Sequence record: NC_071039.1
Strand: one strand, 5' to 3'
Length of the DNA stretch: 64,000 nucleotides
Shown here: one piece after another, positions 7,051 through 39,108 of the stretch
Layout of the letters: each line of letters starts with the position of its first letter
Numbering within the stretch: the first letter of the stretch is position 1
Translations under genes and position numbers: made by a program
The notes under the pieces: generated by a model
Databases searched by the model: none
Seen by the model: the letters and a program-made list of their open reading frames with translations, nothing else
What the model was told of the DNA's origin: nothing

Positions 7051-7149
7051 TGAGCTTTCTACTAAACGCACAATATAACCATAGACAAATAAGTGCATTA
7101 TGCTAATATATACATGCTTACTAAACAGTTACTTGTTAAGTAAGTTAAA

Positions 7150-7455
7150 AAGTCTGTAACAGTGATGTTACAGGATACACAGGCAAATACGGTTGGAAGA
7201 TGCTGTGTAAAGAACAAATATCCAGCTCATTCCTAGGCATTATAGCCTACACATTATATTTGAATGGGCATAAAAACTTCCAAAGAACCTTCGAAATTTT
7301 CTCGTAGGATAGTGTATTAGAAGGAATGCACTATCAGGAAGCTGTAGGTGATGGTTGCTATCCCAGACAGTCCTTTCTAAAATACTTTAATATGATATAA
7401 AGTTCTATGCAACCGTATACATGCTGTAAGATATTAGATTACACCATGTATTAAA
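7150..7455 (+). ncRNA. Candidate structured ncRNA or long structured 5' leader (RNA-A)
   Basis: ORF-free; nested helices 7187-94/7411-18, 7193-99/7277-83, 7225-32/7262-69, 7308-18/7325-35, hairpin 7154-73; putative extended -10 tgcTAATAT upstream. Confidence 0.55.
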
Positions 7456-7558
7456 CGTAAAAGCAAAACCTTCAGTTAGTAATCTCGCAGTGAAGGGGGT
7501 AGGTGAGTGCTACCCAAACTCAACAAACAACTAATGGTCTAGAAAAGGTATAGTATAC

Positions 7559-7966
7559 ATGCAACATACTCACATTCGTTTCTACAACGAAGAAACTCAA
7601 CAGATCGATAACCGCCGTGGCGCTACTGTTGCCTGGGAAACCGCCGGCAACAAGATCCGTATTTCCGTAGCAGCATGTTCGGAAATGGATAACTTCAACC
7701 GCAAGACCGGACGTGAACATGCTGCTAGCCGTCTCGAAAGTGGCGACTACATCGAGTTTAACGGCACCGAACTTCTTAATGCACAGATGTCTTCTGTAAG
7801 TCATGTGCAGTCTGAAGGTCTCGTTCGTGCTATGTGCTTCTTGCTAGCACAAGGCAAAGGCGATCTATATTACCCGGCAAGCGAAGGTCAGCTTCGCAGC
7901 GAAGCCGAGTGCAATAGCTACAACGCTCTCGAGTACCTGAAACACCAGATGGGCATTCATCAGTAA
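7559..7966 (+). CDS. Hypothetical protein, 135 aa, with a common phage AxCSxxDNFxRKxGRxxAxxRL motif
   Basis: Host-like codon usage; motif recalled from small phage proteins, family not assigned. Confidence 0.85.
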   Translation: MQHTHIRFYNEETQQIDNRRGATVAWETAGNKIRISVAACSEMDNFNRKTGREHAASRLESGDYIEFNGTELLNAQMSSVSHVQSEGLVRAMCFLLAQGKGDLYYPASEGQLRSEAECNSYNALEYLKHQMGIHQ

Positions 7967-7979
7967 GTATTCGGCCATT

Positions 7980-8022
7980 CGGAATTGCGATTTAGGTTTT
8001 GGAATTCTAAATCGCAATTCCG
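7980..8022. terminator. Perfect 16-bp inverted repeat (terminator or cruciform)
   Basis: CGGAATTGCGATTTAG-11nt-CTAAATCGCAATTCCG just after the CDS. Confidence 0.65.
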
Positions 8023-8207
8023 GTTTCCAAATTCAATTTTAGGCACAAACTCGGGTCCGCATTTGCATTTTGCATTTACATTTTGTGTTCTGAGTGTATA
8101 TGCAAAATGCAATCGCGCATGTTGTCGATGCATTGGCTAATCTTTTATTTTTGATAGTTTAGAAAAGATTAAGAACAGAAACTATCTGTAAATTAATAAA
8201 AATAACA

Positions 8208-8236
8208 TTTACATTACATACACATATGCATATACT
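8208..8236 (+). promoter_or_regulatory. sigma70-type promoter
   Basis: TTTACA-17-TATACT. Confidence 0.6.
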
Positions 8237-8242
8237 ATATAC

Positions 8243-8520
8243 AAGTTATGCGCTGTTGCATACGTAAATACCTCCTATGTTGTTTAGATATGTCGATTCT
8301 GGTATAACCAGATAGACCTAAGGATGATGCTAGTGATTCCTTAGTATTGTATATTCTAGCTGAGTATAAAGAGTAAGGGGCTTTATACAAATAACAATTC
8401 CTTAGGCAAGATATACCGCTCCGTTGTGCTGACGAGCATAATTTGCCCAGATACAGAGCACGTGACTGTTCTGAGGAGCATTTATATCAGAAAGGCAGAC
8501 TTATGTTTGCCTTTCTTTTT
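8243..8520 (+). ncRNA. Candidate sRNA of about 280 nt (RNA-B)
   Basis: Promoter upstream, no ORF, hairpins 8318-24/8338-44, 8364-71/8381-88, 8418-22/8475-79; ends in terminator agaaaggcagac-ttat-gtttgcctttct-tttt. Confidence 0.6.
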
Positions 8521-8535
8521 GAGCAAATATTCTCT

Positions 8536-8664
8536 TATTCATTTCCTTATTCATTTCCTTATTCATCTCTATTTCATTTGTCACTTCCTTATTCACTTCC
8601 TTATTCATCTCTATTTCATTTGTCACTTCCTTATTCACTTCCTTATTCATCTCTATTTCATTTG
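8536..8664. repeat. Pyrimidine-rich tandem repeat, 12-bp subunits within a 42-bp higher-order unit
   Basis: Unit ccttattcatctctatttcatttgtcacttccttattcactt at 8557, 8599, and partial at 8641. Confidence 0.9.
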
Positions 8665-8669
8665 TTATT

Positions 8670-8787
8670 GCAAATAAGACTAATTCTTATTTGTGTTTGT
8701 AATTTCATTTGTTATTGCAAATAAGAATTAGTCTTATTTGCATTTGCAACGAAAAAGAATATGCAAATAATAACTAATCTTATTTGC
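8670..8787. promoter_or_regulatory. Three tandem 25-bp palindromic operator-like boxes (GCAAATAAGA-N5-TCTTATTTGC)
   Basis: Copies at 8670, 8717 (perfect arms) and 8763; motif recurs at many intergenic loci. Confidence 0.75.
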
Positions 8788-8959
8788 ATTTGCACTGCCT
8801 AGTATATGGATTGGTAGCATACTTGGAAATGGATAGTAGATAAGTAGTTGATTTGTTTATAAATTATAATTCTACACCATACTGATTGACCTTGCTATAT
8901 ATAGCTCGCGCGCGTATGCAAGATGGTAAAAAATAATTTAAAAATATTTTAAAAAATGC

Positions 8960-8988
8960 TTGACTTTCCATTACTACGACCTTAAAGT
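8960..8988 (+). promoter_or_regulatory. Strong sigma70 promoter with UP-like AT tract
   Basis: TTGACT-17-TAAAGT preceded by an A/T-tract. Confidence 0.7.
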
Positions 8989-9054
8989 GCGAACTGTAGA
9001 CGCAGTGTGTAGAACGCTACATAGTAAGCAACGCAGAAAGTAAACAAAAAATGC

Positions 9055-9083
9055 TTGACGCAATGCAAACTAGGCTCTACACT
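9055..9083 (+). promoter_or_regulatory. Second tandem sigma70 promoter
   Basis: TTGACG-17-TACACT. Confidence 0.7.
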
Positions 9084-9166
9084 GTATACAAGCTTAAGGG
9101 GTAAGTGCCCCGAAAGTGTAGTAAGTAAACAACATAATCCTTCCATCAGCTACAGAGGTATACAAC

Positions 9167-9871
9167 ATGTCCGTACATATCACTCGTCAGCGTACCGACA
9201 AACAGCACGTCCTGGCACTGGCAATCAACGGCGTGGTCATCGGCCAGACGATGGCTACTTACACCACCCCGAGCAAGCGCACCTGGTCGGCGACCGCCGA
9301 AGTCGAGCTGGCAGACGGCACCGTCGTTCAGTTCGAGAAGAAAGAAGTGTTCAGCGCGATCCGCATCACCCGCGAAATCGAGCAGGCGCTCGACGGCAAG
9401 GAACTGGCGGCCAAGTACACCCCGGAACCGAAAGTTCCCGGGCAGAAGGGTCCGAAACCGCTCACCGACGAAAGCCGGCTCAGCAACGCGATCGCGATCG
9501 TCAAGGCGGCCATCACCCACACCGGCTTCGACGAAGCTACCCTGGTGTTCGACGGGGTCGACAAGGCCACCTTCGAGCAGAACAGCACTTCCGTCGGCAA
9601 CAAGCTGCGTCGCCTGGGCTTCGTCTTCGAACTCGGCGCCGGCAAGGCGAACAGCGGCAAGGGCTTCCTGATCAACCGCAAAGCGCAGGCCGAGGCAGAA
9701 GCTGCCGAACGCAAGGCCAAGCGCGATGCCGAGAAGAAGGAACGCGAAGAAAAAGCGGCGGCTGCCAAGCGCGAAGCTGACGAACGTAAGGCCAAGCGCG
9801 AAGCCGAACGCGCCGAAAAGGTCGCTGAAAAGAACGCAGCGATCGCCGGTGCGGCACAGGAAAGCAAGTAA
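9167..9871 (+). CDS. GC-rich paralog family member 1 (VFSAIRI domain plus Lys/Glu/Ala coiled tail), 234 aa
   Basis: AGAGG RBS, tandem promoters, terminator; domain shared with 27937 and 33964. Confidence 0.9.
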   Translation: MSVHITRQRTDKQHVLALAINGVVIGQTMATYTTPSKRTWSATAEVELADGTVVQFEKKEVFSAIRITREIEQALDGKELAAKYTPEPKVPGQKGPKPLTDESRLSNAIAIVKAAITHTGFDEATLVFDGVDKATFEQNSTSVGNKLRRLGFVFELGAGKANSGKGFLINRKAQAEAEAAERKAKRDAEKKEREEKAAAAKREADERKAKREAERAEKVAEKNAAIAGAAQESK

Positions 9872-9886
9872 TTGCCCAACTGCGCC

Positions 9887-9918
9887 GAAAGGGGAGCAAT
9901 TTGCTCCCCTTTCTTCAT
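9887..9918 (+). terminator. Intrinsic terminator
   Basis: gaaaggggagcaa-t-ttgctcccctttc followed by T-rich tail. Confidence 0.8.
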
Positions 9919-12830: not shown

Positions 12831-12859
12831 TTGACATTTGATGTGTATACTAGTATAAT
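12831..12859 (+). promoter_or_regulatory. Perfect-consensus sigma70 promoter
   Basis: TTGACA-17-TATAAT. Confidence 0.85.
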
Positions 12860-12865
12860 TTGCTC

Positions 12866-13398
12866 ATGCTGTCGTAACAGCTACTTTGTTCCATTTACAA
12901 GCAGCTCTGTTCCATTACTGGATATTGGTAGTAGAAACTATCCCCATCGTGCCCACAGTATTGTTCTGTTAGAGACAGATTAAAGCATACAAAAGTGGGT
13001 TATTTAAATTATGATTTTGGGTGCTGAAGTATAGTCGTTAGACAAGGATATGTCTAATGTTGCAAAGGACTATGCGAAACGTATTATATATCTTATCCGA
13101 TATTAGATATGTAATAAAAGGATGAAGCTCTGGTAGAAACAGAGTGTAATTCTTGCTTGTATTTCACACGGATATACAAAAGAATATACACACCAACTTC
13201 AGCATTGATGTAAATTTTCTAGCATAGGTATATAACATCGATGTTCCGGGATTCATTGGAAACAATGAGAGAATGATGTAATCTGAGGAAAAAGGTCCCC
13301 GCCTCGTCCATATTACGAAATGGTTTTGAGTACTTATGCCCTCGTCCTATATTGGCATATGGGTTTTATATTTCTCCCGTAATTACGGGAGAATATAA
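12866..13398 (+). ncRNA. Candidate large structured ncRNA of about 530 nt (RNA-C)
   Basis: Consensus promoter, no ORF of 60 aa or more, long-range helix 13022-30/13196-204 enclosing several hairpins, GAAA tetraloop hairpin 13253-68, terminal hairpin 13372-93. Confidence 0.65.
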
Positions 13399-14858: not shown

Positions 14859-14867
14859 GCATATTTA

Positions 14868-14895
14868 GAAAGGGAATTATAATTCCCTTTCTTTT
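14868..14895 (+). terminator. Intrinsic terminator (AAAGGG...CCCTTT family)
   Basis: gaaagggaatt-at-aattccctttc-tttt. Confidence 0.8.
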
Positions 14896-15015
14896 TGGAT
14901 CTATATTAGCAAATACTAATTAATATTATTTGCACAAATTTAATCCTATTGTGTTTTCTATTTTGAAGTGCTACATTACATGTAGTTGCATAAAACTATA
15001 TACAGGAGAAATGAT

Positions 15016-21707: not shown

Positions 21708-21977
21708 ATGTTTTAAGTATTTGTATCTATAATAGTATCGATATATTTTAATATATTAACTATAAAAATGCATAAACAGATACTGTATAAAGAATAAGGA
21801 AAGATTAGATCTTGTCTGTAATAGTTATATATTTTTCAATGTAATATTCTTCATTTTCATTGCGTGTGTTACAAATTAGATCACAAAAAGTTTTAAAATT
21901 CAGTTTACAGCATGCATAGTTTTACGTATTATAAACACACAAAGCAATACAGCATAACGCATTGTAGGCAACACTAA

Positions 21978-22275
21978 ACGGGAGACACCGTCCCGCAAGC
22001 AGCCCGCGCGCGGCGCAGGCGGCGAGCATACAGGTGTACAAGGTCTAGTAACGTGGAAGGCGCAGCATACCTTTCCCTAAATCGGAAATTGGTCAATGAC
22101 GTACCTGCCCCTAGACACTGCTAGACCTTGCTGCTACAAGCGGGACAGCTACAAAGGTACACTGTATGTATCTATGCTTTACCCCGCTTTGTAGCAGGTC
22201 TTAAAACGGTCTACTGGCATATGCTTTAGTGCTAGTAGGAATCATTAACTTACAACTATTATATGCTTCCTGGAG
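21978..22275. other. GC-rich non-coding element with nested and alternative inverted repeats
   Basis: 22039-48/22121-30, 22027-39/22157-68, 22148-56/22187-95, 21990-96/22140-46; no credible ORF on either strand. Confidence 0.6.
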
Positions 22276-22534
22276 GTGAAGAGTATGCCGCCGCAGCATT
22301 GATTAGATTATATAATATTTATATAATAAATGCCGAAACACCTCTTCGATTCGTTTAAAAGACAGTTGTCTGAATTGAATGTTTTTCGGGCAAAAGGTCC
22401 CTTAGATGGGATTTTTTTGCGGCTGCTAACTAGCAAACGCGAATTAATCTTATTTGCAATTTAAGAAAAATACCAGTTGACTGTAGCTTGCTAACATAGT
22501 ACATTTAACTCATAAATCCGCAGGAGTAGCAGTT

Positions 22535-38851: not shown

Positions 38852-39108
38852 TATAATGGTTGCTCTATATAGTGTATGATGTTAGTTGTATACTATATAG
38901 AACAATTCTATTAACTGGGAGGGATTAATAAAAATATTTTCTTGACAATAGTAGGTATAGGATAATTCTATTATACTGAAAATTGTTATAGAAAAATATA
39001 GTTGACAAATTTTGAAAGTGATGAATTCCAACACCGGGTGGCTGTAAGCTGAGACGGTTGACATTCGGTGGGTGGTGGATTGTTACGCGGGTAGATTTTG
39101 AAATTCAC

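Follow-up and report, generated by a model that had tools for sequence, protein, structure and literature searches.

The ncRNA001 locus of Pseudomonas jumbo phage PA5oct: transcription unit, conservation and a possible role in trans

Known phage RNAs and the ncRNA001 locus

Non-coding RNAs of lytic phages with a demonstrated function are very rare. The ncRNA1 and ncRNA2 of PAK_P3 and the candidates from phiKZ, described by Grad-seq and ONT-cappable-seq, are mostly derived from 5′ or 3′ UTRs or processed and have no start site of their own (PMC10914365). In PA5oct, Lood et al. (2020, Environ Microbiol 22:2165; PMC7318152) listed ncRNA001 at 8263..8498 on the plus strand in their Table 1, with 2.40, 5.07 and 4.68% of the phage reads at 5, 15 and 25 min. 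They described high transcription of ncRNA1 and ncRNA2 over the whole infection, from regions "lacking putative ORFs or known promoters" and with phage MIJ3 as the only likeness in GenBank (PMC7318152). PA5oct is transcribed by the host RNA polymerase, and phage reads climb from 21% to 93% of the transcriptome during infection (PMC7318152), so that ncRNA001, given its share, makes up about 4% of the mapped transcripts in late infection. Later sources (the ONT-cappable-seq paper, PhageExpressionAtlas, the Paride paper and a 2026 jumbo-phage review) make no statement on ncRNA001.

The window, i.e., the whole 64,000-nt stretch of DNA analysed here, consists of bases 1–64000 of the 286,783-bp genome of Pseudomonas jumbo phage vB_PaeM_PA5oct (MK797984.1 / NC_071039.1), and we found that a unit flagged in it at 8208–8520 from the sequence is the ncRNA001 gene. 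By megablast, the region 7500–9900 is 100% identical to MK797984.1 with unchanged coordinates, and nine more Wroclawvirus phages match it at 96.5–98.6%. The gene lies inside the 39,080-bp direct terminal repeat of PA5oct and is thus present in two copies per packaged genome. The RNA is already known, having been in GenBank and the literature since 2020, and the published entry is the same locus, strand and RNA, its interval falling within the flagged unit. The original prediction of a stand-alone phage RNA with no ORF agrees with that entry. Its description as early is correct only in part: from 2.4% of the phage reads at 5 min, the share of the RNA grows to about 5% at both later time points (15 and 25 min), with high transcription throughout (PMC7318152). 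The published account has coverage-based ends and no known promoter, and is without structure, conservation analysis or function; what is added here is the promoter, the terminator, the length of about 275 nt, the conservation rank and a list of excluded families. Published stranded RNA-seq, contigs from RNA libraries and exceptional conservation together make ncRNA001 almost certainly a real, stand-alone ncRNA gene.

Transcription unit and conservation

The features of the transcription unit and its control region are as follows.

8058..8117, no strand assigned: 23-bp imperfect palindrome/hairpin (inverted repeat; hairpin energy −29 kcal/mol)
8130..8207, plus strand: A/T-rich upstream region, 78% A+T, with an A-tract (8190–8207) abutting the −35 element (sequence and composition; invariant in 10 phages)
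8208..8236, plus strand: sigma-70-type promoter TTTACA-17-TATACT (promoter scan, 10/12 matches)
8243..8520, plus strand: ncRNA001 transcript, about 275–278 nt (promoter/terminator model, GenBank, Table 1 of PMC7318152, RNA contigs)
8263..8498, plus strand: ncRNA001, EST35_0036, "putative lncRNA" in GenBank MK797984.1 (annotation from RNA-Seq)
8489..8520, plus strand: intrinsic terminator with 12-bp stem, UUAU loop and U-tail (inverted repeat, energy, RNA depth drop)

The promoter was found as originally predicted, with TTTACA at 8208–8213, a 17-nt spacer and TATACT at 8231–8236. Transcription is predicted from this arrangement to start at A8243/A8244, and the published RNA-seq 5′ boundary at 8263 lies 20 nt inside that start. 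Because promoter-like hexamer pairs are common here (42 versus 21.7 expected in 5 kb of AT-rich DNA), the match alone is weak evidence. The A-tract at 8190–8207 resembles an UP element and may act as one. Further upstream, the 8058–8117 hairpin belongs, as a degenerate copy, to the operator-like motif family TGCAAA...TTTGCA found in the terminal repeat. The block covering the −10 element and start, TATACTATATACAAG (8231–8245), recurs with two changes at 9078–9092, at the promoter of gp38, a virion protein gene (TACACTGTATACAAG); weaker copies are present at 38889 and 44172, the four copies found comparing with 1.85 expected, which is not above chance.

The claimed 12-bp terminator stem and U-run are likewise present at 8489–8516. 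The arms (8489–8500 and 8505–8516) form 12 pairs, one of them G-U, around a TTAT loop, TTTT follows at 8517–8520, and the hairpin energy is −17.4 kcal/mol. A simple terminator scan missed 8489–8520 only because the full stem is followed by four Ts instead of five. With a U-tail of 4–5 Us, ncRNA001 has an intrinsic terminator of the kind expected of Hfq-dependent sRNAs. The published 3′ end at 8498 falls about 20 nt inside the predicted stop; both published ends (8263 and 8498) are thus about 20 nt inside the predicted ones, an offset to be expected when ends are called from coverage.

Contigs over the locus come from the RNA libraries of four separate studies. In one run (X1), the summed contig depth is 1,300 at 8010–8110 (about 1,200 across 7983–8147), rises to 0.43–1.0 million over 8212–8514 (433,000 at 8414–8514), and falls to 42 at 8515–8615 and to 0 beyond 8717. 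The depth therefore drops about 10,000-fold at the terminator, which corresponds to a read-through of about 0.01%. The upstream gp35 mRNA (~7100–8009) is equally abundant and separate from ncRNA001. Since contig depth is an average along each contig, it places the 5′ end no closer than ~8150–8290; the contig data are compatible with a start at 8243, short of proof. The G+C content of ncRNA001 is 38.5%, versus about 27–32% in the surrounding region.

The statement that the unit has no ORF holds in substance, as the longest plus-strand frame in it encodes 19 aa (8248–8307) and has no Shine-Dalgarno sequence. Frames of 83 and 93 codons beginning at 8426 and 8443 extend through the terminator into the tandem repeat downstream. 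On the minus strand, "hypothetical proteins" have been auto-annotated over ncRNA001 at 8235–8390 and 8383–8481 in PAC2, Ettore, Paride, Deifobo and Cassandra. All three natural substitutions in ncRNA001 are non-synonymous in these frames, which together with the published plus-strand RNA-seq argues against them, and they are probably false calls.

The DNA beyond the terminator is gene-free and rich in repeats.

8534–8665, downstream of the terminator: tandem array of three 42-nt units, sub-unit CTTATTCATTTC
8655–8795, next to the 42-nt array: three 47-nt units with internal palindromes
up to 8960, beyond the 47-nt units: A/T-rich stretch of the gene-free region
8669–8790, 19169, 22449, 27494, 28477, 29197, 29727, 29765, 29923, 30517, 31352, 32077, 34488 and 35451: copies of a ~28-nt palindrome, here and farther along the terminal repeat

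The 42-nt array could be a set of iterons or binding sites. One 42-nt unit is found in PA5oct and MIJ3 and is absent in the other eight phages; Deifobo and Cassandra have additional indels. The CDS EST35_0037 (8503–8724), annotated as "extensin-like protein", has its ATG in the terminator loop of ncRNA001 and no Shine-Dalgarno sequence; it is made of the 12/42-nt tandem repeat, has an RNA depth of ~0–40 and varies in length with copy number between phages, and is most likely a spurious gene call. The ~28-nt imperfect palindrome (consensus ~TGCAAAyGCnAATTAaTCTTATTTGCA) is recurrent in the terminal repeat. Of the 18 occurrences of its core, CTTATTTGCA, in the 287-kb genome, 17 fall at 8.6–35.5 kb, inside the terminal repeat. 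The palindrome mostly lies just past terminator-like T-runs and before the next gene, four copies are 150–270 nt downstream of ncRNA001, and from sequence and position it looks like a phage-specific operator or a MotA-box-like promoter element of the early region.

We aligned 7500–9900 from 10 phages and found four variable columns within 8056–8525 (8242, 8309, 8402 and 8469), compared with about 130 substitution columns plus repeat-number changes in the flanks. Three of these sites lie within ncRNA001 itself; 8242 just precedes its start, and 8056–8241 has no variable site at all. Site 8402 is evenly split, with T (U) in five phages, PA5oct among them, and C in the other five, which include MIJ3 and Paride; site 8469 is T in two and G in eight. 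Across the first 30 kb of five phages (PA5oct versus the 42-kb loci of Paride, 30-2, Callisto and Cassandra), the interval holding ncRNA001 is the least variable of 2,338 intervals of 470 nt, having 0.85% variable columns against a mean of 6.1% (binomial P ~6e-9). The second least variable interval, 12850–13040, is at an ncRNA004-family RNA gene; within the 30 kb compared, constraint is highest at RNA genes, not at protein genes. The 8058–8117 palindrome is the upstream edge of the invariant block, which starts exactly there and ends at the terminator, and these edges indicate that it comprises the whole transcription unit and its control region. Because the 186 untranscribed nucleotides upstream are equally invariant, the conservation is no proof that the RNA rather than the DNA is the object of selection.

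Relatives were found only within Wroclawvirus. Inside ncRNA001, one metagenome contig and two RNA-seq contigs of other studies depart from PA5oct at no more than one position, which is 8402 where given; the JGI metagenomes yielded one near-identical 1.2-kb contig. Outside Wroclawvirus, a "distant" blastn search of 50,697 phage records gave only chance matches of 30–40 nt, and IMG/VR, searched via the neighbouring gp35, gave no relative outside the genus. The phage, IMG/VR and JGI collections thus hold no diverged homologue that would provide material for covariation. Within the PA5oct genome, BLAST for paralogues returned only a terminator look-alike at 14867–14897, and low-stringency blastn within the window returned none. 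A Wroclawvirus-like contig over 8307–8901 with one tandem-repeat unit fewer was present in a pitcher-plant inquiline metatranscriptome (run X5), which suggests that the phage group also occurs outside sewage and clinical sources.

Predicted folds and exposed segments

The minimum free energy (MFE) of ncRNA001 is −84.6 kcal/mol, with z = −4.1 against shuffles. The minus strand equally has z = −4.1, and fold stability is therefore no guide to the strand. The predicted MFE fold has a 5′ domain (8245–8308) with ACCUCCU in its apical loop, a central domain closed by a long-range helix (8317–24:8398–8405), and a 3′ domain (8410–8488) followed by the terminator. Three segments of the predicted structure are of particular interest.

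8268..8280, plus strand: predicted apical loop with ACCUCCU, like the anti-Shine-Dalgarno tail of 16S rRNA (MFE fold, unpaired probabilities)
8317..8345, plus strand: local hairpin (fold B), CCUAAGGA : UCCUUAG(U), all positions invariant (sequence, forced folds)
8387..8406, plus strand: accessible A-rich stretch ACAAAUAACAAU (one AAnAAnAA), then the second UUCCUUAGG partner; holds site 8402 (unpaired probability, motif, polymorphism)

The ACCUCCU loop at 8268–8280 may, judging from the modelled fold, have a functional role. For the central domain, ctaagga at 8318–8324 had been proposed to have two perfect partners and so to allow alternative folds. The partners exist (tccttag at 8338–8344 and 8399–8405) and belong to a 9-nt direct repeat, ATTCCTTAG, at 8336 and 8397; a 7-mer with two perfect partners also occurs in 6% of dinucleotide shuffles, making this detail only marginal. 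We compared the two arrangements by forcing each helix. With U8402, the long-range helix gives −84.6 and the local hairpin −80.5 kcal/mol; with C8402, which is present in 5/10 phages and replaces the A-U pair by an A-C mismatch in the long-range helix, the values are −80.4 and −81.0 kcal/mol. The natural allele at 8402 thus flips the predicted ground state, and the local hairpin of fold B is the predicted MFE arrangement in C8402 phages. Alternative folding is therefore thermodynamically plausible, with the folds within ~4 kcal/mol of each other, but it has no covariation behind it and one of its two helices carries the C8402 mismatch in half of the phages.

RNAalifold over the 10 phages gave compensatory changes at 0/90 predicted pairs, a count without power given three variable columns. 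The polymorphisms at 8402 and 8469 fall on predicted pairs and weaken them, and so support no specific fold; the majority allele G8469 favours another local hairpin. Presumably both 8402 alleles are functional, and as the local hairpin is invariant, it is the safer structural call. The unpaired probability exceeds 0.6 across 8387–8398, and in the model the A-rich plus UUCCYUAGG stretch at 8387–8406 is likely exposed at least part-time. We infer this exposure from the predicted folds and see in it no evidence for a riboswitch-like mechanism.

Possible functions and comparison with known RNAs

A strong promoter of its own, an end at a terminator, a share of several percent throughout infection, the lack of an ORF and a constraint stronger than anywhere else in the region speak for an RNA acting in trans and in bulk. 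We put the overall reading of ncRNA001 as a stand-alone trans-acting RNA at a probability of roughly 0.6, the trans-acting function taken by itself being at or a shade below that level. In such a scheme, the host sigma-70 RNA polymerase would start at about A8243 from TTTACA-17-TATACT, aided by the A/T-rich upstream tract, and would halt at the 12-bp hairpin and U-tail (8489–8520), yielding an RNA of ~275 nt. The RNA itself would be the product and would act in trans from the beginning to the end of infection, at an approximately stoichiometric level. It would either sequester an RNA-binding factor of the host or the phage or pair over short stretches through exposed segments, for which the ACCUCCU loop (8268–8280) and the A-rich plus UUCCYUAGG stretch (8387–8406) are the candidates. 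A more far-reaching and rather doubtful idea is that ncRNA001 represents a new class of phage takeover RNA, a genus-specific abundant decoy that titrates Hfq/Crc, ribosomal Shine-Dalgarno recognition, the degradosome or an RNA-sensing defence, with the competing helices setting the exposure of the UUCCYUAGG/A-rich segment.

Selection might instead act on the DNA or on transcription as such, the promoter and terminator serving as an origin activator, primer source or insulator for the adjoining repeat-rich DNA and the RNA being a by-product. The T7 and T4 origins have promoter-driven transcripts beside A/T-rich DNA, and the gene-free gap around ncRNA001, 1.2 kb long, is crowded with iteron-like arrays and palindromes. 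The 42-nt array there is the genome's highest-scoring non-coding tandem array and unique to the site, and the upstream untranscribed 186 nt are as invariant as ncRNA001. However, the copy number of the arrays varies between phages whereas the transcribed part does not, the 10,000-fold fall in depth shows that transcription ends before the arrays, the RNA accumulates to 2–5% of phage reads at all times, and neither an initiator gene nor a skew inflection is seen; we consider this explanation, the chief rival, unlikely. Within the trans-acting reading, the RNA could be a specialised decoy, aimed at an RNA-guided or RNA-sensing defence of the host or at an RNA chaperone or RNase, which predicts strain-specific phenotypes. 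High constitutive abundance (PMC7318152), a site in the first-injected, early-expressed terminal repeat amid anti-host genes (PMC7318152), extreme conservation and the lack of annotated anti-defence genes in PA5oct speak for this sub-case. It is nevertheless improbable, as 0/4,227 Rfam families match at E <= 10, with CRISPR direct-repeat, ToxI and retron msr included, and the transcript has no internal tandem repeats.

The remaining alternatives concern how the RNA is made and whether it is read. A processed stable piece, arising by read-through from the gp35 mRNA (7100–8000) or from a transcript starting near 8110, would agree with the report of no known promoter (PMC7318152), with the low-level transcription across 7983–8147 (depth ~1,200) and with the way PAK_P3 ncRNA1 and ncRNA2 are made. 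The depth between the gp35 mRNA and ncRNA001 is, however, ~500-fold below either, two strong hairpins intervene, and a 10/12 sigma-70 promoter is suitably spaced from the published 5′ boundary, leaving little probability for such an origin. Even less attaches to a short-leader mRNA for a 19-residue cysteine-rich peptide (8248–8307, MRCCIRKYLLCCLDMSILV) or a dual-function RNA. Its AUG and the predicted start are 5 nt apart, 10/10 phages keep the frame open and dozens of tiny PA5oct genes lie nearby, but a Shine-Dalgarno sequence is lacking, only a fifth of the conserved RNA belongs to the frame, its zero substitutions give no coding signal, and Lood et al. found no plausible ORF (PMC7318152). 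That ncRNA001 is a leader or attenuator of the "extensin-like" CDS (8503–8724) or of gp38 at 9167 is barely credible: it has the same strand as both and its terminator precedes them, yet read-through is ~0.01%, the "extensin-like" ATG lies in the terminator loop and its frame is just the tandem repeat, and gp38 has promoters of its own at 8960 and 9055.

Searches for a family or a partner gave no lead. Rfam 15 at gathering thresholds had 0 matches in the whole window, and at E <= 10 only sub-threshold, hairpin-type matches in 8050–8700, none above 19 bits within ncRNA001; a tRNA/tmRNA scan found none. Wobble-aware complementary words between ncRNA001 and the phage genome were at the chance level given by shuffled versions of the RNA (2186 versus 2177 at k=12, and 75 versus a mean of 54 at k=16), and the exposed segment has a single 16-nt match in the phage genome, at 137916, which is not at a credible gene start. 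The neighbouring gp35 and gp38, considered as RNA partners, yielded neither a Pfam or PHROG function nor informative Atlas neighbours. Still, ncRNA001 accounts for several percent of transcripts in a jumbo phage that is a candidate for therapy, and no other stretch of the 30 kb compared is as strictly conserved. Its abundance and conservation make it a good candidate for functional work, and the gene model, conservation ranking and excluded-family list ease the design of experiments.

Among known RNAs, CrcZ, RsmY/RsmZ and 6S RNA share with ncRNA001 that they are abundant, structured, stand-alone and end at an intrinsic terminator. CrcZ has several A-rich motifs and RsmY/RsmZ several GGA motifs in loops, whereas ncRNA001 has one and two (paired), respectively. 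A CrcZ/CrcY-type Hfq/Crc sponge was rejected on a single AAnAAnAA motif (8390–8397, unpaired), at least one of which occurs in 10% of shuffles, and an RsmY/RsmZ-type RsmA sponge on two GGA motifs (8322 and 8475), both predicted paired, against a shuffle mean of 3.5. The predicted fold of three separate domains plus a terminator, with no Rfam match, does not fit 6S RNA, which is a long rod with a central bubble, and a ToxI-type antitoxin or CRISPR-repeat mimic was dismissed as 8243–8520 has no tandem repeats and no Rfam ToxI or CRISPR-DR match. Base-pairing sRNAs of the RoxS/RsaE type direct C/U-rich loops against Shine-Dalgarno regions. ncRNA001 resembles them in having three C/U-rich motifs (CCUCCU and twice UUCCUUAG), at least one in a predicted loop, and differs in having no homology to them and a complementarity to the phage genome that is at chance.

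Closer to hand, ncRNA002 (21951–22401) and the ncRNA004 family (including 12831–13398) lie in gene-free gaps of the same terminal repeat, have their own signals and, as ncRNA001, are among the most conserved stretches; ncRNA001 has no sequence similarity to either and is single-copy per repeat. The orphan ncRNAs of PAK_P3 and phiKZ are, like ncRNA001, highly expressed and genus-conserved. ncRNA001 shares no sequence similarity with them and, unlike them, appears to have its own promoter and terminator.
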